Assembly: GCF_902652985.1 (NCBI RefSeq) | Contig: NC_047020.1 | Location: 23,622,001 to 23,686,000 of the forward strand | Length of the DNA: 64,000 nucleotides | Direction: 5' to 3' | DNA from: Pecten maximus | Taxonomy: Eukaryota | Shown: positions 3,738 to 41,600 of the stretch, one piece after another | Position numbering within the stretch: the first letter of the stretch is position 1 | Layout: every line of letters begins with the position of its first letter | Notes under the pieces: generated by a model | What the model was told of the DNA's origin: nothing | Database searches by the model: none | The model's input: the letters and a program-made list of their open reading frames with translations, nothing else | Made by a program: the position numbers and the translations under genes

Positions 3738-6700
3738 CTGTAATTTTTTTTCCCTTAAAAAAAAAAAAGTTACAAAGCAAATTAGGATAAAAACGAATAC
3801 ATTTTACATGAGAATTCATTTTAAATGATAATATGAGAAAAATTGAGTTACTAAGTGAAAAATGAGGAGAGTGAAATAACAAGGGCAGTGAATACATAGC
3901 CTTCCACAATTACGCCTAGATTTATGTAACTAGAGACCTCATACAACCCACAGGGACTTCTTCTATACTAATGATATAATAACACCAAAACATCTTTAAA
4001 AAGAAATCATTTTCTTTTTCATCCTGTTTTACCTTTTATAAATTGAGGTTTTCTTAATACTTTTCTCTCCTAATATTTACATGAAAGTCTACCTGTACTT
4101 AATATTTACATTAAAGTCTACCTGTACCTAATATTTACGTAAAAGTCTACCTGTACCTAATTTATACGTAAAAGTCTACCTGTACCTAATTTATATGTTA
4201 AAGTCTACCTGTACCTAATTTATACATTAAAGTCTACCTGTACCTAATTTATACATTAAAGTCTACCTGTACCTAATTTATATGTTAAAGTCTACCTGTA
4301 CCTATTTTATATGTTAAAGTCTACCTGTACCTAATTTATACATCAAAGTCTACCTGTACCTAATTTATACATCAAAGTCTACCTGTACCTAATTTATACA
4401 TCAAAGTCTACCTGTACCTAATTTATATGCTAAAGTCTACCTGTACCTAATATTTACATTAAAGTCTACCTGTACCTATTTTATATGTTAAAGTCTACCT
4501 GTACCTAATATTTACGTTAAAGTCTACCTGTACCTAATTTATACATTAAAGTCTACCTGTACCTATTTTATATGTTAAAGTCTACCTGTACCTAATATTT
4601 ACGTTAAAGTCTACCTGTACCTATTTTATACATTAAAGTCTACCTGTACCTAATTTTTACATTAAAGTCTACCTGTACCTATTTTATATCTTAAAGGGTT
4701 TTGGACACATAGGGTATTTTTCCATTTTCTGTTAGCCCGACACCATAAATGTTGGCCGACACAGGTTTCCCCTCGCCTTACAAAGCTGTTTATCTATTTT
4801 AGGCCAGTTGGGGGATATTGCTGCTGGCTGAAAAATTTTAATGAGCTAGGTGGTCACGTGGTCCGACGCGTCATCTGGTTCACCTCACCAGTATCACTAG
4901 GCTAGAATCTGTCTTGTTATATGCATTTATAGAGGGAAACTTCAAAGAGCCCCATATTATTTTGTAAACATTGAAAGCAATGACAGTGAATGTCCTGATT
5001 TTATCATCTTACATGTTTAGATTTTCTTTCCACACCTCATGTCTGTAATTGTATAATCAAAATAGTAGACCAGCGGACAATATCACAACCTTGGTAATTT
5101 ACTAATATCACATTTCATCTTTTTATTTATTTTTTATTTTAAAAACCCAAACAATGGCATATACACTATAGGTCTACTCAGAGATGTAAATATCACATAT
5201 GTGATATATACATCTCTGGTCTACTATACAGTGAGGTGACAAAATGATCTCACTTGTGCAGTCTTTTTACGGTGATTAATTTTCCTAGCATTGTTAACCA
5301 TTTTATTTTTGGCATAATTTGATAAGATTTTGTACACTTTTAAGAACATGTTTTACCCTTTCCTGACGTAATATTAACATAAAAATATCCATTTCTTAAT
5401 TTTGCAAGATAAAGATTTGATAAAAATGCAGTAATTTGAAATACAGTTGTCTCATCCTGATGTTATTTAATTAGATAGTACGTAATCACAGAACTGATTT
5501 TTTTTTATCTAAGACGATACATGGGTTTATTGTACATTGAACTTTGAGGATTTCCTTTGTACATATTAAATCAAGAATTTTTAAATATTGGTTGAAATTA
5601 AAGTGTCCAGATAATTTTTTACTCAAAGCATGTTATGATGACATGTTGGAAACTAAAGATCCTTGGATTCTTTATTTTGAATCAGTAACTTTGAACTGTC
5701 AGTCTTGGGTAAATGTTTGAAGAAATCAGTTACTGTTCTGATCAATTTTACAGTAATGTATTCAAACAACGCCCTTTTTTGACAATTTCCTTAAAGAATG
5801 CTTTATGAAGGTTATGAAGGAAATGTATTTGATGTGGTGAAAATGTTACGCAGACATTCGTATTGATTTGATTAAAACATATCATTTTAAATACTATAGT
5901 ATGTTTAAACGTATTCAGTTACTCAAAGTAGAAAATATAAAAGAACTTAACAATTTAGGAAAATATTTATCACTAGCAAATAAACTAAAGGAAAGATTTT
6001 TTATAAGATTTTAAATAGAATATATTCATTTTTAATGATTATTTCTCTGTTTCCCTGTAACAAATCTGACAAATTAGCTTATTGAATTATAAATCATGTA
6101 AGAGTGGATGCCTTTGTCCATTAATGTTATATACTATTTTATCCAATAAGTTGTAAAACTTATGGAATAAAGTTGAATTTAATACAGTTGTTAAATGAAT
6201 AACGGGATCATCACTGGAGTAAATGTAAAGTATTCCCACATCACAAAACCTTTGGTAGATAGTGTGTAAATAGTGATTTAATGCGACACACATTTGGGTG
6301 TTTATAACGTTAGTTATACTATCATCTCGGCAGCAGTGAACCTGTGACCTAGGAGGCTGACCGACCTCGTTATCAGAATGAAATTTTGCATATAGGTCAG
6401 TTGTCCAGATGGGCCCATGCTGTGCCCTGTATCTCAGCGTGTATATACACAACCCCAGGAGTGTGAGGGTAATTTGACTGGCTTTTCAGAAAACCAACCT
6501 ATAGACAACTTTAACCTTTTTGTGTCTAAAACCCTTTAAAGTCTACCTGTATCTATTTTATATGTTAAAGTCTACCTGTACCTAATATTTACGTTAAAGT
6601 CTACCTGTACCTAATATTTACGTTAAAGTCTACCTGTACCTAATTTTTACATTAAAGTCTACCTGTACCTAATATTTACATTAAAGCCTACCCGTACCTA

Positions 6701-9700
6701 ATTCTCCTCCTTCCTCCATCCACCTCTGTCTCTCAGCCAGCAGACCATCACTGTCCAGGTCCACGGTCCGGGTAGGGTAGTTTACACCATCCCCCACACT
6801 GTAACACAATTATAACATTGAAAACCATATTACATGAAATATTCAAATTTCCAGCTAACAATACATTCTAAACAATAACTTTATTTTAACCTTTTACAAG
6901 AAACTTTTCGTAAAAAGTGGTCATTTTTCTGTTTTATCTTGCATAACTGCTATTCTATACTAAGTACATGTAAACAGCAGTCCTCATGGAGACTACTTTA
7001 CGATCTGGTAAGTCAATGAATCAAAAACAATGAATTTGGCAATCAGTAAAATATTGTATTGTAGTTAACAAATCAAGGCAATAAAAAGACTGCCTAAGAG
7101 TTTAAGCCTAAAACAAAGCTTAGAATTTTCCAAAGAATATTATTTAAATGTCTATATTTTTCAAGAAGATATCAGGATGTAGAAAATGTTTGTCACAATT
7201 TATTTAGACATATGAATTGGAGAAATAAGTTTCATGCAAGAGACACAGAGATGATTCAGTGAAAAGCTTAAATGCAAGACATGCATTGACTTGTAGAAGC
7301 TAAATGTTTCAAAAAGTTAATGATCGGGTAAAATTTATATGCTTAATTCAATCTGCAGATAAATATCAGGAGTGATTTAAATTATCATGTAACATGTATT
7401 GTTATTTTGATAAGTTTATAAGCATTAAAACATTTTAAGTGAAAAAGAAATATATTGGAATGTAACTGCATTGTCTGCATTAAATATAGAATTATGAACT
7501 TCCAAAGAATCATTTTATGTCTTTTAGTTTTTCTTGCTTAAACTTACGAATAAACCAAAACATAAAAAAAAAAAAATCCAGATTCTACATTATTTAGCAT
7601 ATAATACTATAATTTTTGGCTAAAGCAATCATAACATAATGACCGAAGCAGCTGACAGCTCCTTAATATTTTGAGACCAGAGTGCCCCTTCCAATCCCAC
7701 AGCTACTGGAACAATATAAGGTTAGCTCTGTAGAGACGAGAAAAATAATGGCTTTCATATACTATATAGAAATGTAAATGTATATTAAGCTGTTTAGTAT
7801 AATAATAATAATAAAAAAAAACAAACAAAAAACTCAACAATTTAATGTTGAATTTAAAATAGAAATCTATGCTACAGAATCGAAGCATCAATAATTTTAC
7901 ATATCAATGGGAAAAAAAATAAACGTATACATGGTAAATAAAATAAACAAACAGGGTTTAAGGTAAAACTAAGGCCAAATGAAAATCATTTTTTATGATG
8001 ACTGTTATATTCTGAGAGAGATATCAATATGAATCACCTGGAGTTACATACATGGATACTTTCACCTTGAATAACGAAACATAAATAATTAATCCCAGAT
8101 ATTTCTCCTTCATAATTATCTGTAAAACATTTTACAATCGTCATCTGAGAATATTTGCATTCATTTTTGTACTTTAAATGACATTGACAAAAATTCCTAT
8201 TGGGAAATGAGCAAACTTCTGTTGTTACATAAATTATATTCAAGGATAAGATATTATATAACAGTTCATGTATATAGAGGTGTCTAATTACAACAGAAGA
8301 TACACCCTTAACTAAGTTAGACATCACTAGCAAAAGCTACTGTTGAATCGGGAGCGATAACGAAGCTACTGTTGAATCGGGAGCGATAACGAAGCTACTG
8401 TTGAATCAGGAGCGATAACTAAGCTACTATTGAATTTGGGAGCGATAACTAAGCTACTATTGAATTTGGGAGCGATAACTAAGCTACTATTGAATAGGGG
8501 AGCAATAACTAAGCTACTATTGAATTGGGGAGTGATAACGAAGCTACTATTGACTTGGGGAGTGATATCAAAGCTACTATTGAATTGGGGAGCGATAACG
8601 AAGCTACTATTGAATTGGGGAGCGATAACTAAGCTACTATTGAATTGGGGAGTGATAACGAAGCTACTATTGAATTGGGGAGTGATATCGAAGCTACCCT
8701 TGAATTGGGGAGTGATATCAAAGTCACTATTGAATTGGGGAGTGATAACGAAGCTACTATTGAATTGGGAGTAATATGGAATTCATCCAGAAATATGCAA
8801 ATTGAAACCGATCATAATTGAAATTAACACCACAACTACTTGAAATTAGTTTGTTAGTAAAAAAAATATACATATAAACCTTAGCAACTACATTTTTTTC
8901 ATTTATGTGAAAATCTCCAAAGATTGAGATGGTGGTTTGGTAATTTTCTTCTCTTTAACAGAAATCATATATATATATAGTATTACACTGTGTTTCCTAT
9001 CTATACCACATCACCATTCACTGTATTAAAGAAGACACCCAAACGTTAACTCACTGTCAAATTAAAAAAGCATCATCAGTGTCTTCTTAAAATGTTGTTT
9101 CTTTAAATTTAACTTCATACCAAAAAATAAAGGAAAATCAGAAAATCTTCAAAAGCCTGTTTAAATCTGAAACTTTGGAAAAGACTGAATTCTTATTGAA
9201 ATTTCAACAACAAAAAATGTTTTAATTTAACAATAGTACACAAATCCAGTTCGTTTAACCATACAACAAAAACAAATTAAAAGAGAAGAAAATATAAAAC
9301 CAGCGGACATGCACCAGAGTAAAAGCAAAATGGTCAGAATTCTTAATTTACTTGAGACCTAGCCAAACATAGGCAAATGTATGCGAGAAATTGTATATAT
9401 TCCATAAAGAAACCTCACACCAATTCACCAGCTACAACATTACAAATTCAATATTTTAACATCCCAACCACACTTTCTGACCATTTCCCTTCAACATACA
9501 ATGGTAGGAAACATATATACATCAATAGAAAGATGCATTATCCTCAAGGACTGTTTGATAGAGTTATCTCCCCTCACAGGAAAATTAAGTGAAAACATGT
9601 TTGTGTGTGAACTGCTTCAAAACTTTATAATTTATATCTATGAGTCAAAGTATAGGCTGCTTAAGAACTTTTATAATTGGGTCAGGCCAGAGTGCTGAGA

Positions 9701-12700
9701 TTAATGAAGGCCATAACATTATAAAGGCTCATCATTATAAAGCAGCATAAGATCACTAGATAGCTCCTTAAACCCTGGCCAGATGTAAACTTTAATGCGT
9801 GACAATACAAAAGCAGCCAGTCTGTGCATTGTATTCCAGAAGTGCTATACATACCGCATGTATAATAACAAACATAGAGTATGGTAAATACTATTATATC
9901 CCAGAAACATCAAAAATTGTATTATGTACTTTTTTAATTTTTAACAAGAAAACTGAATACACACAAACATATATATATAGCGCTATTATACTAGCTGATG
10001 GGAGATGAAATTTACAGTAAATAACTACATAAATTAGTCAATATCCAGTTTATCGTTTACCTGAAATCATAATAAATATAGTAAATATTACAGAATTCGC
10101 TTTTTTTATCTGGCATACACCAGGTAAAATAATATCTGGATATTGTATACATACATCACTACAGCAATTAGCAGATTAAAGTACCTGTTGGTGTGAATAC
10201 CTAAACCAGTCAAGCCCATGCATTTAGTACCCTTAGTCAGACAGCACAACAGTGTCAACCAAACAGTCATTCTAGTGTAAGCTACAGACAAGGTACTATT
10301 AAATGGTTAACTGTTAAATTGGAAAGAGTTGTAAAAAATACTGGTGTTTCGAAAATCTGATAGAATACTCCACTCCTTAACACAACTTTCTTTTTATTTG
10401 TCAAGATCTATCAATACCAAAAACAAATCCAGTGAAATATAAACTTCAATGCATATTATTGTACATCAAAAAGATTCCCGGAAATGTTGGTTACAGTGAA
10501 AGGCAACCAGAATATGACTTTTAAAATTTGACTTGAAATTATTGTAGATCTCAACAAGTTCAGAAATAAAGTTTATGTTAATGAGGCGCAGTAGAATATC
10601 TTATTTTCATTCGACAGAGTTGCAGATGCAGAGCGTTAGTCTGGGTCATATATGACAAAGCTATGATAATGCAAATATATAGTAATGACGGTATCACACT
10701 ACGAAGTGAAGTCAGAGCTAACCTTTGTGTTTTACCCATTGTTTGGTACGTATTAGCTTGCTTCGTGCGAGTAGGAAAGGACACCCCGTCTCTTTGACTG
10801 TTATCATGGTAACCAACAAAACAAACAAAAACTTCTGTTACATTTTTCAATACATTTCATACTTAAAAACATTCATCTTGATATCCATCTCATATCCTTA
10901 TTTTTATTTGTAGCACAGATTTCTAATCGAGTTTGTATCTAGACTGAATGTTAATCAAATTTTTCACAGTACACACCAACATTTGGAACTTGTATCACAG
11001 TACAGTATATATATATTTCATACAGTACATGTACTTAAGTTTTAGTCATAGCGATATGGACTAAGAGTGTTGGGACTTATTTTCCATAGCATATTTGTAT
11101 CTGGTACCTTAAAAGGCAACAAAAAAAAAAAATTTATACAGACTACCTTGATGCTACCTTTAGAGAATATCCTCGCTGTCAGTGTGTATATTTAAATTAG
11201 CATGCATATGGATTACAACGCCAATTATCAAATGTTTCACATTTTCAATTAGCCAGACTTTGTGATTTAAAAGAAAACAAAGTCTTTTTCGTTTTTTTAT
11301 TAATTACATACTGAATGTAGGAAAACTAAACATTCATACTGTCACATGGTTTCAGTTAAAAATAAAAGTGATTCTACCAGAATCACAATGGTATAGTCTG
11401 ACGCTTTGGTTGGATTGAAAGTTCATAAAACACATGGAAGATTAAATCATTACTCTTTCTTAAAGGTCATAACAAAATGGTTCAGAATTTTCTTATTGTC
11501 AACTTTTTAACAAGCAGGAATGCAAGGACTTAATGAAACATAGAAATATTTTATGAAATTTAAGTTGAAAGGAAATCCATTTTCAACAGAATAATGATCA
11601 TTTTACATTGAAACGACAGGCAAACCAAAGAGAATTATTATCAAAAGCATAGCATAAAGCAAGCCTAGGTTTAAGGTTTCCACACATTGTCTTAACATCC
11701 AACTGAGTTGGATAGCAGGTACTTCAAATGAAAACTTATATCCTGTATTTTTCTTCAAACCTCAAGATCTGTGACAAATCTACAAAGTTTTTATGTTCAT
11801 TGCAAGACAAAATAACATGGGCTGTCAGTAATTAACTGGGGCCTTTTTCAAAAATTAGAATTTCGCTCCCTCTCTTATTTCTGTTAACATTCGAGTCAGA
11901 TAACATTTTCTATATACTTATCACCTCCTGTCCCGCGGTCCCGATATCTGTTAACATTCGAGTCAGATAACATTTCCTATATACTTATCACCTCCTGTCC
12001 CGCGGTCCCGATATCTGTTAACATTCGAGTCAGATAACATTTCCTATATACTTATCACCTCCTGTCCCGCAGTCCCGATATTTGTTAGGAAACAGATGCT
12101 CTCTATTGTTAGCTATCCAACATACACATTCTTAGAATCATGACAAGATTACTTACGTTGAAAATATAGGTAAAAACCATTGCTTCTTTGTTTCACCAAA
12201 GACTTCAATAAAGTTACTATACTTTCCCAGACTGAAGCCATTTTTATCTGGACCGCTTTGGAAAATAGGGGATCTAAACGCCTCTGAAAAACATAAAACA
12301 AAATACAATGAAATATTCAATATTTACCAGAATGTTGATTCAAGCTTAAACATTTAGGCAAAACAAAATGATGGGAGGTAAGAAATACTGCTTTTATGTA
12401 ATATTTTTGCCATTTGTTTTTTGTTTATTTTGAATATTAATGAATGTTTTATCTGACAGTAATTTACTATTTACTGTGACTGTACTTCAGCTAAAAATTC
12501 TGTGAAATGCTATTTCATTATCCTATCAGGACACAATTAGTCTACTTTGTGTCAAAATTGATATGTTGGTTGTAAGGCTTAAAACAGTCATTTGTTTGAA
12601 GTAACAATGGTTTATTTGAAGTAACAATGGTATATTTAAAGTAATAATGGTGTATTTGAAGGTACAATGGTTTATTTAAAGTAATAATGGTTTATTTAAA

Positions 12701-26600: not shown

Positions 26601-29600
26601 TGAGGGAGGGTGGAGGGGTGGGTGGGGGAGGATTGAGAGGTGGGTAGGGGAGGGTGGAAGGGTGGGCGGGGGAGGATTGAGAGGTGGGTAGGGGAGGGTG
26701 GAAGGGTGGGTGGGGGAGGATTGAGAGGTGGGTAGGGGAGGGTGGAAGGGTGGGTGGGGGAGCTTGAGGGTTGAGGGGTGGAGGGGTCACATGGCTATGA
26801 AAAAACCCCCACATTTTTAATGATAGAAAGTAAAACTCATTTGTGGAGTTGTATCAGATGTCACCATGTTTTTACATTTATTTATATCTAGTTATTTATA
26901 AAAGATGAACAGTCATGGAATCAAATCCAGTTCTTGTGTTCAAATTGAATACATGACGATAAAAGTATTCAGATTCAAACAATACTTACTTATTACACAA
27001 TTCATACCCAACATAGAGAAATGAAGATCATGACTTGGAGTGGACACTTTAAATATTGCATGTAGGAGGATCAGTATTGTTTAAATAAACTAGGATACTT
27101 GCTGAAGAGGACACTTTTGGTTGAAGGGAGATGGTAAATCATGATCTCTTATTACTTTGGAGAACATTAGTTGTTAATTGGTAGAGAGTTCTTATTTTGC
27201 TGCCATGCGGCACTGGCTGACCTGCCAGAGTTCTAGATTCAAAGGAAGTCCTTTCTGTTATAAAATGATTGTTAGACCGAACACTAATATTTCTAAACAG
27301 GTTAACGTACTTCTTTGGAGTACCCATTAACAATGGCCATATATAGAAGATATAAATTACATTGATGATACATGATCTATTATGCTAGAAATATGCTTTT
27401 TGTTAAAAAAAAAGAAAAATACTTTAATTTTATTTTTGTTTATGTTATAACTGAACATGTTCTACACAGATTTTGACACGTCCTTGAAGCGACCGATCAG
27501 CTCCCGATACAGCTCAGGGTTATTCAGCAAAATATTCAGTCCTAGTGACGGAAAAACGTTCAACGTAAGTCTTAATCTGGTATTCATTTTGGTTTGTTAT
27601 GTTTTATTTAGACTTGTTATTTTATACTCCACCCTCAAAGAAAAATATAACAGGTTACAGAGACATTTCAATAAATGTATTAGTTTGATTACTAAAGACT
27701 AACTCAGAATTTTGCATCTTTTCAAGTATCCTAGACTCAACTACTATCAAACCTTTTAAATTCTGAAATGTACGTTAAATGTATGCTGTGAAAACATAAG
27801 TGTGTAGTGCTGGTATGTGCCAAGAATTTAGAGCACATTGAGAAATTGAGGTTCAAGTAATGCTTTTTTAAAACAAAACTTATTACATATTCTCAGAAGG
27901 AAAAATTTTACTTTATATGAGTTTGTCAGTTAATTAAAAGACATTTCAGATATAATCAGCTTTATAGAATATTTGTTTTTTTCCGTAATACAATATGAAT
28001 AATTATATTACTTCGATGAAATGCATTTCCTTTTTTATGAAATAACAACATATCAGCAAGTATTTGAATTCGAAAAATGAATTTTGAAATGTTATCGGAT
28101 TACAGGTGACATGTAGTCGTCAGATGCTGAAACAGTTGGAAGGGAGACTACTCCAGGCAATAGCTCTCTACAAGAGGAGACTGGAATGGTTGACAACAGA
28201 GAGCAGACGGTTGTTTGGCGTGATTGAAGAAAAGGCTGTGACCATTGTGTTGGATATCAGGAACATGTCCCCACAGCAGTTTGATCAGTACAAAATAGCT
28301 CTAGAAAGGGTCATCTTTGAACAACTCACACAAGTAGCTAAATTTAACCTCATTAGGTGAGTTACACATCAGAATTGATGTCCTAACTTTTGACAAAGAT
28401 AATTAAGCACTTGGTGTAATAAGTAATTAGTACATAATTATATATTTATAACTGGCCAGTTCTACCATGTGATACGGCTATGTCATAAATATCGTAAGAT
28501 ATATATGTATAATAACTCTATTGTGACATCATAGATAAATCATGACGTCACAATATCCATATGATATCATACGATTGTCTCGATATCTGTATAAAAATGT
28601 ACCATCTGAGTCAAAGTCCCCTGTCTTATAAAAAAATTAATGTGAAAGTTTTCATCGATATATTCACATAAATATGTGTTGAGTCTGATCAACAGAATCT
28701 AAAATTCTTAGCTATGTCAATCAATAAATTACATGATATGATCACAGATATAAGATCCCTGTGATTGATGTTGTGTCATTAAATGGTAGATATTATGGGT
28801 AATAACTATATGCTGGTGTTTCAGGGCTGTGGACGACTTAGTTGGTTATCAGGAGGAATGTGTACCTGTGACCTTTGACACCATACAGGGAGCTGTTGAT
28901 TGGGTGTGGTCAATAGACCGTCTCCAGTCAGTATCACGGTCTGCTGCTTGTGAGGCTGTACTCAAGGCAATGGCTGACAAAAACGTAAGTCATGCCAGTT
29001 GTCTATATATTGTCTGAATAAAGTTATGTTTGACTTAAAATGCCTCTGCTTAATTTCAATGTAGATAATTTTTTCATTTATTTTATATTTTTTTCATTCC
29101 ATAAATTTTTTTCAGAATGAAGCTGTTTACCTGTTCACAGAAGGAACTTCTATAGATACATGTAAAGAAATCATGAAAGAAAAGGTGAGTTTATAACTTT
29201 GCTGGCATGTATAAATCAAAAGATAATCTGCGTAGTATGGATCTTACCTGGTAACTAATCTGAATTTGTGTTCATAAAGGGACAGGTCTGATAAGTCTGA
29301 AAACTTCCTGCTTGATTGGGTTTACATACCCTGGCCATCCTGCTTGATTGGGTTTACATACCCTGGCCATCCTGCTTGATTGGGTTTTCATACCCTGGCC
29401 ATCCTGCTTGATTGGGTTTTCATACCCTGGCCATCTTGGTTAAAAGCATCAGAATCTATTATGCTGCACATCCTCTTAGCTGTCTTGAAAAAAATCCTTT
29501 CTCTTAACTGACCCTTTCACTCCAACTCTCCATGAATTATATAAAATTATTGATAACAAAGCCCACAATGCCTAATACATGTACTTAAGATGTACAATGT

Positions 29601-32600
29601 ATATGAATTTTCTACAAAAGGGCAATTCTGTGCTAAATTTATTATGCTAATCAGTTTTGAGTTTCTGATTAATCAATTCAGAAAGTGAAACTGATTTCCA
29701 TCAATAGCAGTACCCATCCAGTCTCAGCTGCTCTCTTGACAAGATCCTTGAAGTTATACCATGGTGACTTATTTCAGGTGATGGCACTGAAGCGTAAGAT
29801 CCCAGTTCACTGTGTGTCTTACAACTGTGGAAGTTCAGACACTGTCCGTTTTCTTCGAGACTTTGCAGCATGCACAGGTGGCAAGTAAGTATATATTTTT
29901 AGTGTCTTCACAAAAATGGCAATTTAGCAAAAATATTAAATCACTATCAGTCAAATACAGGCATATGTCATGATTTCTTACACAAAAATATGGCATGCTA
30001 GTTTTCAGTGAAGAACACAGTCATCATATGATGAAAATTTTATTATCTTTACATGTATATGTTTCAATTTTGCTCTTTAAATTAGGATTGATTTTAAACC
30101 ATTTCTAATTACTACCAGATTCCATGCATATGCTGTGATCATGGAGATGGACTCTTATGAAGGCGAGCCGTTAAACCCTCGTACCAATAAGGCTAACATC
30201 CTATTGAAGAAGAAGACCTACGGAGGAGTTCCTCCCGGATCAGGCATGAGGGAGGATGTCATCCTACTGTTTGAGGAACTCGAGGACGCTAAAAACAATC
30301 TGTCACAAATCCAAGCCCTGATGGAGGAGGTACCAGAACCAAAAATACAGATAGGTATGTCATCTTTGTTATCACCTAGTGATAGGTGTGTCATCTATGT
30401 TATCACCTAGTGATAGGTATGTCATCTTTGTTATCAACTAGTGATAGGTGTGTCATCTTTGTTATCACCTAGTTATAGGTATGTCATCTTTGTTATCACC
30501 TAGTTATAGGTGTGTCATCTATGTTATCACCTAGTTATAGGTGTGTCATCTATGTTATCACCTAGTTATAGGTGTGTCATCTTTGTTACCACCTAGTGAT
30601 AGGTGTTGTCTTTGCTATCACCTGGTTATAGGTATGTCATCTTTATTATCACCTAGTTATAGGTATGTCATCTATGTTATCACCTAGTGATAGGTGTGTC
30701 ATCTATGTTATCACCTAGTTATAGGTGTGTCATCTTTGTTATCACCTAGTGATAGGTGTGTCATCTTTGTTATCACCTAGTTATAGGTGTGTCATCTATG
30801 TTATCACCTAGTTATAGGTATGTCATCTTTGTTATCACCTAGTTATAGGTATGTCATCTTTGTTATCACCTAGTTATCAACATTTATATTGTATATTCCC
30901 TTAAATATGTCTATGTTTGCATTCTTTTTGAAAAAGAAATTGTTAAATTATGTTCATTGTGATCATATTTGGAAGTTAAGAAGTTTTCAAACCTCCTTGG
31001 TTGATAGTTCTTGATGTCCCTATCCTGGTTATAATAAAGCCAGCATGCACTCATACCAAGTCTAATATAGCTGGCACTCACACCAAGTCTAATATAGCTG
31101 GCACTCACACCAAGTCTAATATAGCTGGCACTCACACCAAGTCTGAGACAGCTGGCTCCCATACCAAGTCTAATATAGCTGGCTCCCATACCAAGTCTAA
31201 TATAGCTGGCTCCCATACCAAGTCTAATATAGCTGGCTCCCATACCAAGTCTGAGACAGCTGGCTCCCATACCAAGTCTGAGACAGCTGGCTCCCATACC
31301 AAGTCTAATATAGCTGGCTCCCATACCAAGTCTAATATAGCTGGCTCCCATACCAAGTCTAATATAGCTGGCTCCCATACCAAGTCTGAGACAGCTGGCT
31401 CCCATACCAAGTCTGAGACAGCTGGCTCCCATACCAAGTCTGAGACAGCTGGCTCCCATACCCAGTCTAATATAGCTGGCTCCAATACCAAATCTAATAT
31501 AGCTGGCTCCCATACCAAGTCTGAGACAGCTGGCTCCCATACCAAGTCCAATATAGCTGGCACTCACACCAAGTCTAATATAGCTGGTTCTCACACCAAG
31601 TCTAATATAGCTGGCTCCCATATCAAGTCTGAGACAGCTGGCTCCCATACCAAATCTAATATAGCTGGCTCCCACACCAAGTCTAATATAGCTGGCTCCC
31701 CATACCAAGTCAGAGACAGCTGGCTCCCATACCAAGTCCAATATAGCTGGCTCCCCATACCAAGTCTGAGACAGCTGGCTCCAATACCAAGTCTAAATAG
31801 CTGGCTCCCATACCAAGTCCAATATAGCTGGCTCCCATACCAAGTCTAATATAGCTGGCTCCATACCAAGTCTAATATAGCTGGCTCCCATACCAAGTCT
31901 AATATAGCTGGCTCCCATACCAAGTCTAATATAGCTGGCTCCCATACCAAGTCTAATATAGCTGGCTCCCATACCAAGTCCAATATAGCTGGCTCCCATA
32001 CCAAGTCTAATATAGCTGGCTCCCATACCAAGTCTAATATAGCTGGCTCCAATACCAAGTCTAATATAGCTGGCTCCCATACCAAGTCTAATATAGCTGG
32101 CTCCCCATACCAAGTCTAATATAGCTGGCTCCCCATACCAAGTCTGAGACAGCTGGCTCCCATACCAAATCTAATATAGCTGGCTCCCATACCAATTCTG
32201 ATACAGCTGGCTCCCATACCCAGTCTAAGACAGCTGGCTCCCATACCAAGTCTAATATAGCTGGTTCTCATACCAAGTCTAATATAGCTGGCTCCCATAG
32301 CAAGTCTAATATAGCTGGCTCCCATAGCAAGTCTAATATAGCTGTTTCTCACACCAAGTCTAATATAGCTGGCTCCCATAGCAAGTCTAATATAGCTGGC
32401 TCCCATACCAAGTCTAATATAGCTGGCTCCCATACCAAGTCTAATATAGCTGGCTCCCCATACCAAGTCTAATATAGCTGGCTTCCCATACCAAGTCTGA
32501 GACAGCTGGCTCCCATACCAAATCTAATATAGCTGGCTCCCATACCAAGTCTAATATAGCTGGTTCTCATACCAAGTCTAATATAGCTGGCTCCCATACC

Positions 32601-35600
32601 AAGTCTAATATAGCTGGTTCTCATACCAAGTCTAATATAGCTGGCTCCCATAGCAAGTCTAATATAGCTGGCTCCCATAGCAAGTCTAATATAGCTGGTT
32701 CTCACACCAAGTCTAATATAGCTGGCTCCCATAGCAAGTCTAATATAGCTGGTTCTCACACCAAGTCTAATATAGCTGGCTCCCATACCAAGTCTAATAT
32801 AGCTGGCTCCCATACCAAGTCTAATATAGCTGGCTCCCATACCAAGTCTAATATAGCTGGCTCCCATACCAAGTCTAATATAGCTGGTTCTCACACCAAG
32901 TCTAATATAGCTGGCTCCCATACCAAGTCTAATATAGCTGGCTCCCATACCAAGTCTAATATAGCTGGCTCCCATACCCAGTCTGAGACAGCTGGCTCCC
33001 ATACCAAGTCTAATATAGCTGGCACCCATACCAACTCTGAGACATCACTCATACCAAGTCTATGACAAACCACATACCAAGTCTATGACAAACCTCATAC
33101 CAAGTCTATGACAAACCTCATACCAAGTCTCATACAGCACTTGTACCAAGTCTATAACAGCACTTGTACCAAGTCTATGACAACACTTGTACCAAGTCTA
33201 ATACAGCACTTGTACCAAGTCTGTGACAAAACCTCATACCAAGTCTAAGGCAGCACTTGTACCAAGTCTATAACATCACTTGTACCAAGTCTATGGCAAA
33301 CATAATACCAAGTTTAAGACAGCACTTGTACCAAGTCTATGATAGCACTTGTACCAAGTCTCATACAGCACTTGTACAAAGTCTATGACATACCTCATTC
33401 CAAGTCTTATACAGCACTTTAATTTACCAAGTCTATGACAAACATCATACCAAGTTTAAGACAGCACTTGTACCAAGTCTCATACAGCACTTGTACCAAG
33501 TCTCATACAGCACTTGTACCAAGTCTCATACAGCACTTGTACCAAGTCTCATACAGCACTTGTACAAAGTCTATGACATACCTCATTCCAAGTCTTATAC
33601 AGCACTTTAATTTACCAAGTCTATGACAAACATCATACCAAGTTTAAGACAGCACTTGTACCAAGTCTCATACAGCACTTGTACCAAGTCTCATACAGCA
33701 CTTGTACCAAGTCTCATACGGCACTTGTACAAAGTCTATGACATACCTCATTCCAAGTCTTATACAGCACTTTAATTTACCAAGTCTATGACAAACATCA
33801 TACCAAGTCTAAGACATCACTTGTACGAAGTCTCATACAGCACTTGTACCAAGTCTCATACAGCACTTGTACCAAGTCTATGACAAACATTATACCAAGT
33901 TTAAGACAGCACTTGTACCAATTATATGACAAACATCATACCAAGTTTAAGACAGCACTTGTACCAAGTCTCATACAGCACTTGTACCAAGTCTCATACA
34001 GCATTTGTACCAAGTCTATGACAAACATTATACCAAGTTTAAGACAGCACTTGTACCAAGTCTATGACAAACATCATACCAAGTTTAAGACAGCTCTTGC
34101 ACTAAGTCAACAACTTACTTAGCAGAGTCACCTGCTATGTCATTATACCCCCGCAACGAAGTTAGGGGGGTATACTGGAATCAGGTTGTCTGTCCGTCTG
34201 TCCGTCCGTCCGTCCGTCCGTCTGTCTGTCTGTCTGTAGACGCATTTTGTCCGGACAACTCCTCCTAAACCGATGGGCCAATTCCAATGAAACTTCACAC
34301 AAATATTAATGATCATGTGTAGATGTGCATGCCACTTTATTTTTCTCAAAATTATGGTTGCTATGGCAAATGGTCACTATAAACAGGTTTTCCGATAAGA
34401 ACCATAACTTTAAGTTGTTCGGACAACTCCTCCTAAACGAAATGGCCAATTTCAATGAAACTTCACACAAATATAGAGGACTTTGTGTAGATGTGCATGC
34501 CACTTTATTTTTTTTCAAAATTATGGTTGCTATGGCAACTGGTCACTATAAACAGGTTTTCTGATAGGAACCATAACTTTAAGTTTGTCCGGACAACTCC
34601 TCCTAAACCGAAGGGCCGATTTCAATGAAACTTCACACAAATATAGAGGACCATGTGTAGATGTGCATGCCACTTTTTTTTTCTTCAAAATTATGGTTGC
34701 TATGGCAACTGATCACTATATTACTGGGTTATCTTAGTTAGCCTCTAATTAACAGTTCCAATTCACCATTGACTCGTGCAGATTGCGGGGGTATTAGTCA
34801 GCCATCCTGGCAACAGTTCTAGTTACTCTTAGTTGAAATTGAAAATTACAAAATTGATTATTTTCAAACTTAAACAATCAAAATATAATTTGCATAAAGC
34901 ATCGAACATTAAACTTAAGCACATGCCAATGTCCTAAGTAGCTCTTTAAAACTCCCATTCACCATTGTTTTCAAAGGATTTTAAATAATTGACCAACTAT
35001 TTAATTGACCCCAACAGGTTTTACAGTACCGGCCTACAATGGCTCGACTATACCAGAAATTGTTTCACATAACAGACCCTGGCTGTTCACGGGGCGATAG
35101 ACTCAACAAGCAAACAATTATCACTTCATAACTATAAACCAGATTATTAGTTTAAAGATATCAAAAACAAAAATTTGATAAAACCATCCAACCATCATCT
35201 TTATGCATAAATAGCAAAAATCATTCTCACCATAATTGAATATCAAAGCTACCATAGGGTATGTACACAGGTACACACACACCTATATGTAATTAGATAT
35301 CAAGATAAGGTATAAATAATGAAGGTAGACTGGCTGCTGTCCAGTTAAAGCTACACGGATACAGCTCACTGATCAATAAAGCCTTGTTAGCTTTGCAGGA
35401 AAAAAAGAATATATATTATCATTTTTTGGTGTCACAATGTTTAATTTTGCATTTTCTTCTTTTTCTGCTATATATGAATACAAGATGTTCAAGCAATATA
35501 ATATTCCTACAGTAAACATAAATATTGAAATTGGTATCAAAGGTAATCTTGTACAATTTATATGAAGCTTAATTACTTTATGAACTCAGTACTTGTAGCT

Positions 35601-38600
35601 TGTGATTGAATGAATTCTGCACAAACATAATGGAACAGTTACACCCAACTACCTGTTTAAACCGTAGTGTATATATATAGTATATACTGATAATTCTCTG
35701 CTGTATTTACAGACAAATCAATTCAGAAGTGACAATGGACCTGTTAATATATAGTCAGCACTTAGTGATCACACACAAACTAATATTATAGTTCTCATTG
35801 TTTATCTTTGTCATGTCTAAAACATTTGAAACTGATCTGTTGGATGGAAATAATTGGTGTACAGTTTTCTTTGTTTATGACGACGTTGGATTAATAATTG
35901 ATGGATAACTTTGTTGTGTTGTTTTGTTTATTACCACACTGATCATGTTAATTACGTGTCAGGACGGCGATATATCTTTCAACCCCGCTTTGTCTGTTGG
36001 ATTTTTCAATAGAATCTGTGATAGAGAGAGCACCGACAACAGATCCAGACGAGCAGTATATGAGCTCAAAAGACTGGCTGAAGAAATTCGGACTGACTGC
36101 TAGACGGCTTGAGTTATATGACGTTCTTGCTGGGGTGGCCTTTAAACATATGGATGGTGTGGTGGATATCAAACAGAAACCTGATCACAATACACAAACT
36201 GACGCTGTGAGTATATATACGATATGTAGACTGATGTTGTGAGTATGTATATACGATATGTAGACTGATGTTGTGAGTATACGATATGTAGACTGACACT
36301 GTGAGTATATACGATATGCAGACTGATGCTGTGAGTATATACCATATGAAGACTGACGCTGTGAGTATATACGATATGTAGACTGACGCTGTGAGTATAT
36401 ATACGATATGTAGACTGATGTTGTGAGTATGTATATACGATATGTAGACTGATGTTGTGAGTATACGATATGTAGACTGACACTGTGAGTATATACGATA
36501 TGCAGACTGATGCTGTGAGTATATACCATATGAAGACTGACGCTGTGAGTATATACGATATGCAGACTGATGTTGTGAGTATATACGATATGTAGACTGA
36601 CACTGTGAGTATATACGATATGCAAACTGACGCTGTGAGTATATACGATATGTAGATTGATGCTGTGAGTATATACGATATGTAGACTGACGCTGTGAGT
36701 ATATACGATATGTAGACTGACGCTGTGAGGATATACAATATGTAGACTGACACTGAGTATATACGATATGTAGACTGATGCTGTGAGTATATACGATATG
36801 TAGACTTACGCTGTGAGTATATACGATATGTAGAGTATATACAATATGTAGACTGACGTGAGTATATACGATATGTAGACTGATGTTGTGAGTATATACG
36901 ATATGTAGACTGACACTGTGAGTATATACAATATGTAGACTGAAGTTGTGAGTATATACGATATATAGACCGATGTTGTGAGTATATACGATATGTAGAC
37001 TGATGTTATGAGTTTATACGATATGTAGACTGATGCTGTGAGTATATACGATATGTAGACTGATGCTGGGAGTATATGGGATATGTAGACTGATGTTGTG
37101 AGTATATACAATATGTAGACTGATACTGTGAGTATATACGATATGTAGACTGATGTTGTGAGTATATACGATATGTAGACTGATGTTGTGAGTATATACG
37201 ATATGTAGACTGATGTTGTGAGTATATACTATATGTAGACCGATGTTGTGAGTATATACGATATGTAGACTGATGTTATGAGTTTATACGATATGTAGAC
37301 TGATGCTGTGAGTATATACGATATGTAGACTGACACTGTGAGTATATACGATATGTAAACTGATGTTGTGAGTATATACTATATGTAGACCGATGTTGTG
37401 AGTATATACGATATGTAGACTGATGTTATGAGTTTATACGATATGTAGACTGATGCTGTGAGTATATACGATATGTAGACTGATGCTGGGAGTATATGGG
37501 ATATGTAGACTGATGTTGTGAGTATATACAATATGTAGACTGATACTGTGAGTATATACGATATGTAGACTGATGTTGTGAGTATATACGATATGTAGAC
37601 TGACGCTGTGAGTATACACGATGTGTAGACTGATGCTGTGAGTATATACGATATGTAGACTGATGTTGTGAGTATATACGATATGTAGACTGATGTTGTG
37701 AGTATATATGAAATGTAGACTGATGTTGTGAGTATATACAATATGTAGACTGATGTTGTGAGTATATATGAAATGTAGACTGATGTTGTGAGTATATACG
37801 ATATGTAAACTGATGTTGTGAGTATATACAATATGTAGACTGATGTTATGAGTATACAATATGTAGACTGATGTGAGTATATAAGATAAATATATATATA
37901 TACTCTGATGCTGTGAGTATATATACGATATGTAGACTGATGTTATGAGTATACAATATGTAGACTGATGTGAGTATATAAGATAAATATATATATATAC
38001 TCTGATGCTGTGAGTATATATACGATATGTAGACTGATGTTGTGAGTATATACAATATGTAGACTGAAGTTGTGAGTATACAATATGTAGACTGATGTGA
38101 GTATATAAGATAAATATATATATATACAGTAATCCCTCGACCTATCGCCACTCGATAATACCGCCACCCTCGCATACCGCCACCTTGTCCCCTAAAACGG
38201 ATTTTTGCACTCTTTAATTCCCCCGTTAAGTCCGCCACCCTCGCATACCGCCATCCGCCATATGCTTTCAAGAACAAATGTGCCGAATCACTGTATATTT
38301 CCCTCGATTTCACCGCCATGTTTTAATCGCCGTGGAACTCTTTAGTGTTCTATTTTTAGATACGGGTACTTCCCCATTCAAGCACAGGTGAAGTTACGCT
38401 TCAGTGATTCTATTCGCTGATCGAATCGTCATCGGTATTGACAAGAGGAATGTTTGTTTTGTAATAGAACAAGTTATGGATTCTACTCACATTGTGTATG
38501 AGTACGACTGACCGTCCGACAATTTGTTGATTGTCGATAAACAAAGAGAAATTACCGAAGTGCAGACAGAAAGCGACATCACTGACTCCGTTACAAGTTT

Positions 38601-41600
38601 TGACAACAGTGAAACGGACCTTGACTATGACGAACCACAACATATTCCAAGCGGAACAGAGGCAAAAGCCGCTATAGAAACGGTAATGCGATTTCTAGAA
38701 ACGTCGGACAAAACAACAGAATTAGAAATAGACTCTTGCAGAATGATTTCAAAAAAAAAATATCGGAAATTATCACAGACAATATGCGACAAAAGCATAT
38801 CAGTGATTTTTTTTACCAAACTACAAAAACAATAACCATATTTAGACACTTTTACTGTTCAGTACCTGAAATTGAAATGTTTGTGTTTTCTGATTTGATC
38901 ACAATATAAGACATTGGATTCCTGCATTTTTGTTGTCAAATTATATAATACCGCCACCCTCTTTATACCGCCAATTACAACAAGAACAAAAGGTGGCGGT
39001 ATAACGAGGGTAGACTGTACTCAGATGCTGTGAGTATATACAATATGTAGACTGATGTTGTGAGTATATACAATATGTAGACTGATGTTATGAGTATACA
39101 ATATGTAGACTGATGTGAGTATATAAGATAAATATATATATATACTCAGATGCTGTGAGTATATACAATATGTAGACTGATGTTGTGAGTATATACAATA
39201 TGTAGACTGATGTTATGAGTATACAATATGTAGACTGATGTGAGTATATAAGATAAATATATATATACTCAGATGCTGTGAGTATATACAATATGTAGAC
39301 TGATGTTGTGAGTATATACAATATGTAGACTGATGTTATGAGTATACAATATGTAGACTGATGTGAGTATATAAGATAAATATATATATATACTCAGATG
39401 CTGTGAGTATATACAATATGTAGACTGATGTTGTGAGTATATACAATATGTAGACTGATGTTGTGAGTATATACGATATGTAGACTGATACTGTGAGTAT
39501 ATACGATATGTAGACTGATGTTGTGAGTATATACGATATGTAGACTGACGTTGTGAGTATATACAATATGTAGACTGACACTGTGAGTATATTCGATATG
39601 TAGACTGATGTTGTGAGTATATACGATATGTAGACTGATGCTGTGAGTATATATGATATGTAGACTGACGCTGGGAGTATATACGATATGTAGACTGATG
39701 TTGTGAGTATATATGATATGTAGACTGATGTTGTGAGTATATACAATATGTAAACTGATGTTGTGAGTATATACAATATGTAGACTGATACTGTGAGTAT
39801 ATACAATATGTAGACTGATACTGTGAGTATATACAATATGTAGACTGACACTGTGAGTATATACGATATGTAAACTGATGTTGTGAGTATATACGATATG
39901 TAGACTGATGTTGTGAGTATATACGATATGTAGACTGACACTGTGAGTATATACGATATGTAAACTGATGTTGTGAGTATATACGATATGTAAACTGATG
40001 TTGTGAGTATATATGATATGTAGACTGATGTTGTGAGTATATACGATATGTAGACTGATGTGAGTATATACGATATGTAGACTGACACTGTGAGTATATA
40101 CGATATGTACACTGATGTTGTGAGTATATAGGATATGTAGACTGATGCTGTGAGTATATACAATATGTAAACTGATGCTGTGAGTATTTACGATATGTAG
40201 ACTGATGTTGTGAGTATGATGTTAGTTTGGAAGAAACAGACAAGACCTTATTCAAAAACCAACTTTTCAACTGATTGTTGTTGTCTTCATACATATTCAG
40301 TTAATATGATCATGAAAAGGACTGTTTAAAGGAGAAAGGTGTTGTAGATGAATATAGTGTGATTCTAACCATCTCATTCACAGATAAATAAGCCCAAGTT
40401 GATGAATGCTAAGTACTGTGATCGATTTCCTGTGGTTCGCTGGAAAGACGGAGGAGTGGTTCATGTACAAGTTACACCCGAGATCCATCGTAGTTACGAA
40501 CAGAGGATGAACGTGGCAACACAGGCCTTCCATCAGCGGTACGTGTCTAGCATTACAATTGATTGCTATATTTAACAGATCGCTTTATTTCACTTGTTCC
40601 TCCATGACCATTTAAGTTCTAAAAAGTCCTTTATTAAATTTCATGCAGTCAAAGAGAATAATCATCTACCCTAATTATAGAGTACTTACATGTAGTCATG
40701 ATTGTAGTTAATAAATATTTTCACAGGTAGATAAATTTTTATGTTTACCCATTTGAAGTTAATAATTGTAAGTATAGATAACTTGTGTATACACATGTGG
40801 TATTTGTATAGACTAAATTAATTTAGATACCATATTGCTAATGAAGACATTTTACATATAATCTCATGTGTCTAAACCTTAAACAGGTGTCTGAAATCTA
40901 CTAAAAACAAATAACAAAATCAGGAACTACAGTACAGTATTGTACAGGACCTGAATTGCTTTTATAATCACATAATCACATACCTAAAATGCAAATAATG
41001 AAATAGGTCATAAATGGTTTTTATTGTTTCAATAAATTCATTATAAGTGCTTTTGACTATATACATTTGTTTATACAAGTCATTGGCAGATTCTCATTTT
41101 TCCCGTGTTACAGGGTTGACTGGCTGAACCAGGGAAGTCGTGCCTTGTTTGGGACAGTGATTGAGGATCAGATCTATATCCTCATTGACACCTCATCCTC
41201 AATGTCACCTAGTATACAGTTTGTTAAGGATAAGCTGTTCATCCTCATGCAGGTAAATCTTCACACACTTCAGTGCCAGTTACTGTAGTCTGGTGGCTTG
41301 TCTGTACAGTACAGCAGTTCAGTAAGTCAGGACAGGTGTATCTAGGGACTAATACATCTCACCATAACCCTAATACAGACCTTCTTCTTTTCTCATGGTT
41401 CTTTTAATAAGGAAACCATCAAATTCATTTAAAAATGTAATTTTCTCTATGTAGGTTGGTCTGATGCTTTTGTTTACTGTCCTATCTACACATTAAGGTT
41501 TTATAAGGAGGGTACCTGTGTAAGATCAGGCAGCGCAAAAATTATGAGCTTGTGAATAAAGTGCAGTACATTTATCAATCAATTTAATTGACAGGAACAA

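Follow-up and report, generated by a model that had tools for sequence, protein, structure and literature searches.

Minisatellites that tandemly duplicate exon-intron boundaries have been described in amphioxus as 'mirages'. They are known from Adh3 (Canestro et al. 2002, as cited in PMC3087553), from the globin genes BflGb6/9 (PMC3087553), and from PGBD5 and TnC (PMC3902484). Either end of an intron, 5' or 3', can carry them; their copy number varies, and splicing proceeds normally (PMC3087553, PMC3902484). In humans, minisatellites with a first monomer lying across an exon-intron boundary have been found in F7, IFI6 (6-16), CBS, LMNB2, and PDGFA, with a 37-bp unit containing the last 4 exonic nt in F7 IVS7 and a 31-bp unit in CBS IVS13 (Borensztajn et al., PMC1557585). 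Among the identical donors of F7, the most upstream alone is used (PMC1557585). Additionally, in Rogers' model, introns are gained or remodelled by tandem duplication of AGGT-containing segments (discussed in PMC3087553 and PMC2812944; for Zhuo et al. 2007 on the subject, see PMC2812944). Here, we describe boundary minisatellites in a 64-kb stretch of the genome of the scallop Pecten maximus (contig NC_047020.1, positions 23,622,001 to 23,686,000; hereafter, the window). The window contains two head-to-head animal genes, encoding a ZDHHC2/15/20-like palmitoyltransferase (ZDHHC, minus strand) and VWA3B (plus strand).

Six mutually unrelated minisatellites, with units of 18, 46, 20, 29, 31, and 30 bp, begin at, or at most 15 nt from, a 5' splice site (donor) of these genes. 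We consider it probable, at roughly three chances in four, that they are mirage-type minisatellites, each arising from a local tandem duplication that spanned the junction, was tolerated, and then expanded. As in the amphioxus mirages, exon-intron boundaries are tandemly duplicated in units of tens of bp that reiterate the splice signals, normal splicing is kept, 5' or 3' boundaries can be involved, and several genes per genome are affected. Unlike in amphioxus, the scallop arrays belong to a mollusc, reach 40-100 copies and kilobases in length, and occupy six donors in two adjacent genes; our analysis also adds a genome-wide motif count to the amphioxus descriptions. As in the human variable number tandem repeats, the first monomer contains the last few exonic nt and the 5' splice site, identical pseudo-donors follow, and the most upstream site is used as a rule (in the scallop, at ZDHHC exons 3, 4, and 8). 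However, the human cases are isolated single loci, and IFI6 and CBS use second and third copies, a use of which we saw no instance in the scallop RNA contigs, the only transcripts at hand. The raw material, tandem repeats with splice signals at exon edges, is that of Rogers' model, but no new intron has been made, since an orthologue from another assembly has VWA3B introns 8 and 9 at identical points of the protein.

An earlier note on this window, made from its letters alone, had supposed that the structure was undescribed as a system, and the three papers on amphioxus and human loci (PMC3087553, PMC3902484, PMC1557585) correct it on this point. We found no description from a mollusc and no genome-wide count in the literature, with subscription journals outside the search. 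The scallop arrays are an unusually dense instance of an already described structure, not a new kind of element. They extend boundary-spanning minisatellites beyond amphioxus and a few human tandem repeats.

Arrays at six 5' splice sites of two scallop genes

Tandem arrays, detected with Tandem Repeats Finder (TRF), make up 23.6% of the window, the sequence of which contains no N. The donors of ZDHHC exons 3, 4, and 8 were placed by RNA contigs, and the other three by homology and reading frame. RNA contigs from 4 runs of 4 studies were aligned to positions 12101-18100, with one spliced contig per run; they fixed ZDHHC exons 2-9, and every intron was GT..AG on the gene strand. VWA3B exon ends were obtained from tblastn searches of six full-length homologues against the window, together with frame continuity. 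The homologue alignments stop at 30335-30341 and 36206-36215, and the frame is unbroken from exon 8 to exon 9 (ATA G/AA TCT, the slash marking the junction) and from exon 9 to exon 10 at ~40384. The arrays and their anchoring exons are as follows.

16709..16803, minus strand: ZDHHC exon 3, 95 nt; donor GT at 16708-16707; joints 16143>16709 and 16803>17277 in 4 runs
16579..16716, minus strand: 18-bp array, 7.7 copies; unit of the last 8 exonic nt (CACGCCAG) and GTATGTATTA (TRF)
16023..16143, minus strand: ZDHHC exon 4, 121 nt; donor GT at 16022-16021; joint 15333>16023
15970..16027, minus strand: 46-bp array, first unit and start of the second; opens with exonic GGAT, then GTAAGT
15747..15968, no strand assigned: repeated element of ~220 bp inside the 46-bp array; very deep separate RNA contigs, and sequence
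15509..15731, minus strand: remainder of the 46-bp array, 4.8 copies, 96% matches (TRF)
13863..13994, minus strand: ZDHHC exon 8, 132 nt; donor GT at 13862-13861; joint 12283>13863
13021..13862, minus strand: 20-bp array (GTAAATATTAGACTCCACAG), 42 copies, plus the degenerate 18-nt unit GTAAGTGTAACCTTACAG at the donor (TRF)
6698..6798, minus strand: putative ZDHHC exon 10b ('exon 11' of the earlier note), 101 nt; donor AATTAG/GTACGG (sequence and open reading frame)
6536..6702, minus strand: 29-bp array, exon-proximal part, 5.8 copies; begins 5 nt within exon 10b
4697..6535, no strand assigned: piggyBac-like non-autonomous transposon, 1,839 bp; ~15-bp terminal inverted repeats (AGGGTTTTAGACACA...) and TTAA target duplication
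4069..4696, minus strand: 29-bp array, distal part, 21.7 copies (TRF)
30105..30354 (start approximate), plus strand: VWA3B exon 8; donor GT at 30355-30356; tblastn alignments of homologues P0002/7/11/18/21 end at 30335-30341
30351..30877, plus strand: 31-bp array, 17 copies; unit of ATAG and GTRTGTCATCTTTGTTATCACCTAGTG (TRF)
36013..36206, plus strand: VWA3B exon 9; donor GT at 36207-36208 (tblastn)
36198..38112, plus strand: 30-bp array, first block; unit of ACTGAYGCT and GTGAGTATATACGATATGTAG (TRF)
38113..39023, no strand assigned: non-array interruption of the 30-bp array (gap between TRF rows)
39024..40217, plus strand: 30-bp array, second block, 39.5 copies (TRF)
40384..40539, plus strand: VWA3B exon 10, with a predicted start (tblastn); 3' border of intron 9

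The arrays run head to tail, with 4.8 to more than 40 copies and 85-96% matches in TRF. In five of the six, each unit includes the final 4-9 exonic nt and the GT. ZDHHC exon 3 ends in CACGCCAG/GTATGT, and its array begins 8 nt within the exon, the first copy containing the used donor. Exon 4 ends in GGAT/GTAAGT and is directly followed by one full 46-bp unit, the ~220-bp repeated element, and the 4.8 further units. At VWA3B exon 8, which ends at 30354 with ATAG/GTATGT, the 31-bp array opens at 30351; at exon 9, which ends at 36206 with ACTGACGCT/GTGAGT, the 30-bp array opens at 36198, its two blocks together filling ~75% of the 4,177-nt intron 9. TRF, the RNA contigs (exons 3 and 4), and homology or frame thus bear out the five exon-end arrays that the earlier note had recognized in the two genes. 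The sixth, which the note had placed just inside ZDHHC intron 8, is also real: exon 8 ends in ATTAG/GTAAGT, a degenerate 18-nt unit follows at the donor, and the 42 units of 20 bp start 15 nt downstream of it. Exonic letters that depart from the consensus recur in the units, CACGCCAG and ACTGACGCT among them. These observations support the derivation of each array from its own exon-intron junction; the consensus units differ between loci, and the six arrays arose independently.

The two blocks of the 29-bp array are separated by the element at 4697-6535, whose terminal inverted repeats and TTAA duplication identify it as piggyBac-like. At least 40 near full-length copies with 93-96% identity and 470 candidates were found in the genome (own-genome searches covered an assembly of 918,306,378 bp in 3,983 contigs), indicating a young and abundant family. 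Because 4697-6535 is a transposon, the 29-bp blocks form one split array anchored at 6698-6798, where reading frame and homology place the probable donor. The anchor of this array, which the earlier note assigned to exon 11, is thereby corrected, and an exon adjoining 4697 was rejected. Since transposons have inserted into both the 46-bp and the 29-bp arrays, these arrays are old.

It is highly improbable that the arrays are a dispersed satellite or transposon-borne repeats with donor-like motifs that match exon ends by coincidence. The 20-bp array (13021-13848) and the 29-bp array (4069-4696 and 6536-6702) do have an 11-nt stretch, GTAAATATTAG, in common, which may reflect chance in AT-rich sequence or a distant relation, and the remaining letters of the units differ. 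More than 30 loci in the genome also carry 19-23-bp arrays that are 62-74% similar to the 20-bp array, but their units are different and have mainly ACAG/GTAA in common with it. Furthermore, the window units reach into non-consensus exon letters, the own-genome search, made with the 20-bp array only, returned no near-identical copy elsewhere, and the genuine transposons of the window look quite unlike the arrays. One of the similar loci, L008, has two consecutive exons with an array after each, the first of which begins exactly at CAACAG/GTAAAT; the locus is a biased find, detected by its similarity to the 20-bp array, and the exon is known as an open reading frame alone.

Assembly artefacts in repeat-rich introns are even less credible, and we give this explanation almost no weight. 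Minisatellites are hard to assemble, and some arrays elsewhere in the genome are 97-100% identical, such as three copies of 86 bp at L054 with 100% identity; we read this identity as a sign that the process is ongoing. In the window, however, transposons with target-site duplications lie inside arrays, the copies are internally diverged (85-92%, TRF), and independent contigs enter the 18-bp array with zero differences, for example at 16460-16610. The same structure is also present in other assemblies (L068 and L071, described below).

At ZDHHC exons 3, 4, and 8, the RNA contigs carried joints from the first, exon-adjacent donor in all four runs. No joint from a later donor copy was present among the spliced contigs of these runs at the three exons, although contigs lose rare forms, so that the lack of decoy-donor joints is no proof of absence. 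Assembled contigs, in place of the junction reads that the earlier note had proposed, thus returned the first copy only at these exons, and its suggestion that the arrays furnish new alternative donors found no backing in them. Splicing from later copies of the 18-bp or 30-bp units would preserve the reading frame.

These results suggest the following course of events. At each site, a short stretch spanning the junction, with the GT donor flanked by between a few and some tens of nt of exon and by 10-40 nt of intron, would have been tandemly duplicated in place. The duplication would be tolerated if the spliceosome stayed on the exon-adjacent, 5'-most donor: with that donor in use, the extra copies are intronic, the mRNA is unchanged, and the duplication is free of cost. 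The array could then expand and contract as any minisatellite does, by slippage or unequal exchange, and pre-existing, conserved introns, originally some hundreds of nt long, would grow to several kb. In a genome very rich in minisatellites, many junctions would be hit, and donors appear to have been hit or retained more often than acceptors.

Two further arrays near junctions of the window were rejected as anchored. The 67-bp array at 11880-12087 is separated from the exon 9 donor by 69 nt that are unlike its unit, and so it is not a seventh donor array. The 29-bp array at 17342-17806 was not accepted as anchored at an acceptor: its end lies 38-39 nt upstream of that of exon 2, and the intervening sequence holds no more than a vague, degenerate copy.

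Donors and acceptors in the window and elsewhere in the genome

Across the 26 mapped window exons, an array begins 3-8 nt within the exon at five donors and 15 nt downstream of a sixth. Under a chance model of 19 independent arrays and ~30 donors with uniform placement across introns, 0.34 donor hits are expected, or 0.48 with array sequence taken out of the denominator, compared with 5-6 seen (P(>=5) = 3e-5 to 1.4e-4). The claim of the earlier note that the placement exceeds chance is thus upheld, but these P values overstate the surprise because the window was flagged for this very feature. No array overlaps any acceptor in the window, the nearest lying at 39 nt. The note had stated that no array overlaps an acceptor, which is true of the window but not of the genome, where both 5' and 3' boundaries are affected.

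We counted three tandem copies of donor motifs in the whole genome, summing both strands and using the pattern read backwards as a built-in control. Tandem CAGGTAA occurred 48,065 times (8,741 reversed), compared with 8,912 for the permuted CAGTGAA (7,654 reversed) and 13,823 for the one-base variant CAGGTTA (9,267 reversed). This is a ~5-fold excess over the 7,654-9,267 of the four permuted or reversed controls. Similarly, tandem AGGTRAGT was found 14,521 times versus 3,099 reversed. In 216 kb of non-array sequence, the background difference for single motifs was only ~1.4-1.5-fold. The first hundred matches of each donor pattern came from 8-10 separate arrays with unrelated units. Therefore, the donor consensus is several-fold enriched in minisatellite units genome-wide. 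The acceptor-like tandem TTTYCAGG showed no excess across the whole genome (644 versus 1,231 reversed). Arrays with more copies contribute more to the pattern counts, and those across donors exceed the others in length; by a rough calculation, the excess fits ~5-10% of arrays being donor-derived, a few-fold over uniform seeding genome-wide. As an annotation-free quantity, the donor-motif excess offers a cheap statistic that can be compared across genomes.

To sample exons without bias, we used matches to Pfam models (kinase and dynein heavy chain) and widened the dynein set to 70 distinct exons via paralogue conservation. The dynein set comprised 67 donors and 68 acceptors, and each candidate was read individually. 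Three dynein donors were spanned: L047 (26 bp x16, 12 exonic nt), L054 (32 bp x16, in addition to the 86-bp array), and L056 (48 bp x11, 15 exonic nt). Two dynein acceptors, L045 (42 bp x28) and L050 (38 bp x5), and one kinase acceptor, L038 (54 bp x9, 35 exonic nt), were also spanned. The dynein counts of 3 and 2 compare with 1.6 expected per junction type under uniform seeding and short introns (P = 0.22 for donors). Since they fit uniform seeding, and acceptors are hit too, they do not establish a donor-specific mutational process. In pooled counts from this genome, 8-9 donor-spanning arrays stand against 3 acceptor-spanning ones. Mirage-type arrays lie at ~3-5% of the sampled splice junctions and at about one-fifth of the window donors, and minisatellites make up 18-24% of the genic DNA sampled. 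Six other candidates (L040, L048, L049, L051, L060, and L063) were rejected as junction-spanning, their arrays lying only near the junction.

The donor-tied process proposed in the earlier note accordingly gains from the genome-wide motif excess but not from the unbiased dynein counts. In its mutational form, the 5' splice site would be a true duplication hotspot through polymerase pausing, R-loops or U1-bound nascent RNA, or exon-edge chromatin. The ~10-fold window excess over uniform seeding, the enrichment of the tandem donor consensus with its 3.5-fold drop upon a single +3 change (CAGGTTA), the acceptor motif without excess, and the pooled predominance of donor-spanning arrays would all agree with it. 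However, the window was chosen for showing the feature, the pattern counts are weighted by array length and donor arrays are the longer ones, a single exact 8-mer represents acceptors poorly, and acceptors were equally hit in the dynein set. In addition, acceptor copies lying upstream can compete for splicing, so that asymmetric tolerance would produce this asymmetry as well. We therefore regard a hotspot as unlikely. The over-representation of donors in the window and in the motif counts fits both a donor-linked mutational bias and asymmetric tolerance.

Alternatively, selection might maintain the arrays as decoy U1 sites that act in exon definition or shield long AT-rich introns from premature cleavage and polyadenylation. 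A strong consensus is kept in many decoy donor copies, arrays hold the functional GTAA variant far more often than GTTA, and arrays that span donors exceed others in length (median 16 versus 6.75 copies, P = 0.005; the sample was small, and part of it was selected). Against this stand the orientations of donor-like motifs, both from small samples: 2 sense versus 3 antisense in the window without the anchored arrays, and 6 sense versus 5 antisense at the unbiased loci with the anchored L047 and L054 included. The absence of a sense-strand bias in unanchored arrays makes such selection, another proposal of the earlier note, less likely, and acceptor-spanning and donor-less arrays were equally common in the unbiased set. 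We consider this account very unlikely.

Several points weigh against tolerated junction-spanning duplication as a full account. Neutral tolerance predicts only 0.3-0.5 donor-anchored arrays in the window, where 5-6 are seen, and it leaves unexplained why six donors and no acceptors are affected there. It does not account for the greater length of donor-spanning arrays. First-copy usage was observed at three of the six arrays, with rare isoforms dropped by the contigs, and the evidence for copy-number variation comes from the dynein paralogues L049 and L050, outside the window (see below). It is possible, though we hold it doubtful, that minisatellites in the scallop arise or persist preferentially at 5' splice sites, well beyond neutral tolerance. 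If so, thousands of donor-seeded arrays would explain the ~5-fold motif excess and constitute a main engine of intron growth, and an as yet undescribed mechanism specific to donors, mutational or selective, would be indicated.

Orthologous introns and intron growth

VWA3B orthologue loci were mapped in four other assemblies (L068, L070, L071, and L072). The 9.7-kb orthologue L068 (GCA_021962125.1) has a 39-bp x2 donor duplication with 10 exonic nt and two acceptor-spanning arrays of 65 bp x5.5 and 54 bp x3.1. These tandem duplications, one donor- and two acceptor-spanning, lie at 2436-2513, 4829-5181, and 5352-5521. A 127-bp x2.8 donor-spanning array was identified in L071, and no junction-spanning array was found at the VWA3B loci of L070 and L072.

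The comparison of orthologous introns across species, as the earlier note had proposed, is informative about growth. VWA3B introns 8 and 9 measure 5,658 and 4,177 nt in the scallop and only 255 and 433 nt in L068, where they stand at matching protein positions (after ~aa 406 and ~aa 474). Because the positions are shared and the introns are short in L068, the arrays enlarged old introns and made no new one. This agrees with the suggestion of the earlier note that the arrays are a route to intron expansion, by which introns measured in hundreds of nt reach several kb. Beside the real donors lie tens of perfect decoys, and splicing is undisturbed in the data at hand. The scallop genome is thus a natural test bed for donor choice among identical copies and for intron growth.

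Copy number can be followed in L049 and L050 (C13, 6.88 Mb and 6.92 Mb), which represent a recent segmental duplication of a dynein heavy-chain segment. They carry 2 and 5 copies, respectively, of the 38-bp acceptor-spanning unit, a difference indicating that such arrays are dynamic.

Some dynein introns consist almost entirely of array. At L048/L055 (C1:289401-292221), ~90 units of 30 bp occupy a 2.8-kb intron, and at L051:2043-2437, eight units of 45 bp fill an intron of ~390 nt. Both arrays begin 15-25 nt past the donor and do not include it.

Other features of the two genes

The ZDHHC start codon lies near 19127 on the minus strand. The remaining ZDHHC exons covered by the spliced contigs are as follows.

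17277-17303, minus strand: ZDHHC exon 2, 27 nt (spliced contigs, several runs)
15262-15333, minus strand: ZDHHC exon (spliced contigs)
15016-15047, minus strand: ZDHHC exon 6, 32 nt (spliced contigs, several runs)
14321-14441, minus strand: ZDHHC exon (spliced contigs)
12157-12283, minus strand: ZDHHC exon 9 (spliced contigs)

Downstream of exon 9, two candidate exons on the minus strand, at ~10700-10800 and at 6698-6798, are each in frame with exon 9, and the peptides that they encode resemble each other. On our reading of its translation, the latter (exon 10b) resembles the C-terminus of ZDHHC15/20. Joint inclusion of both would hit a stop, and they may represent a duplicated, mutually exclusive pair.

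Near the 5' ends of both genes, there are pure G runs of 23 nt (18525-18547) and 30 nt (20590-20619). Within VWA3B, 324-bp tandem units of one family occur in opposite orientations, 30 kb apart, at 21070-21747 and 51802-52701. At 34187-34720, a (TGTC)n microsatellite is followed by ~170-bp tandem units (TTTGTCCGGACAACTCCTCCTAAACCGAAGGGCC...). This family is also present at L038:301-940 and L058, and its occurrence at other loci suggests a dispersed repeat-carrying element, unlike the junction arrays. Finally, the short repeated elements at 14558-14791 and 15747-15968 in ZDHHC introns are covered by the separate, very deep RNA contigs (up to ~550-780) and look like transcribed repeats of the short interspersed element type.

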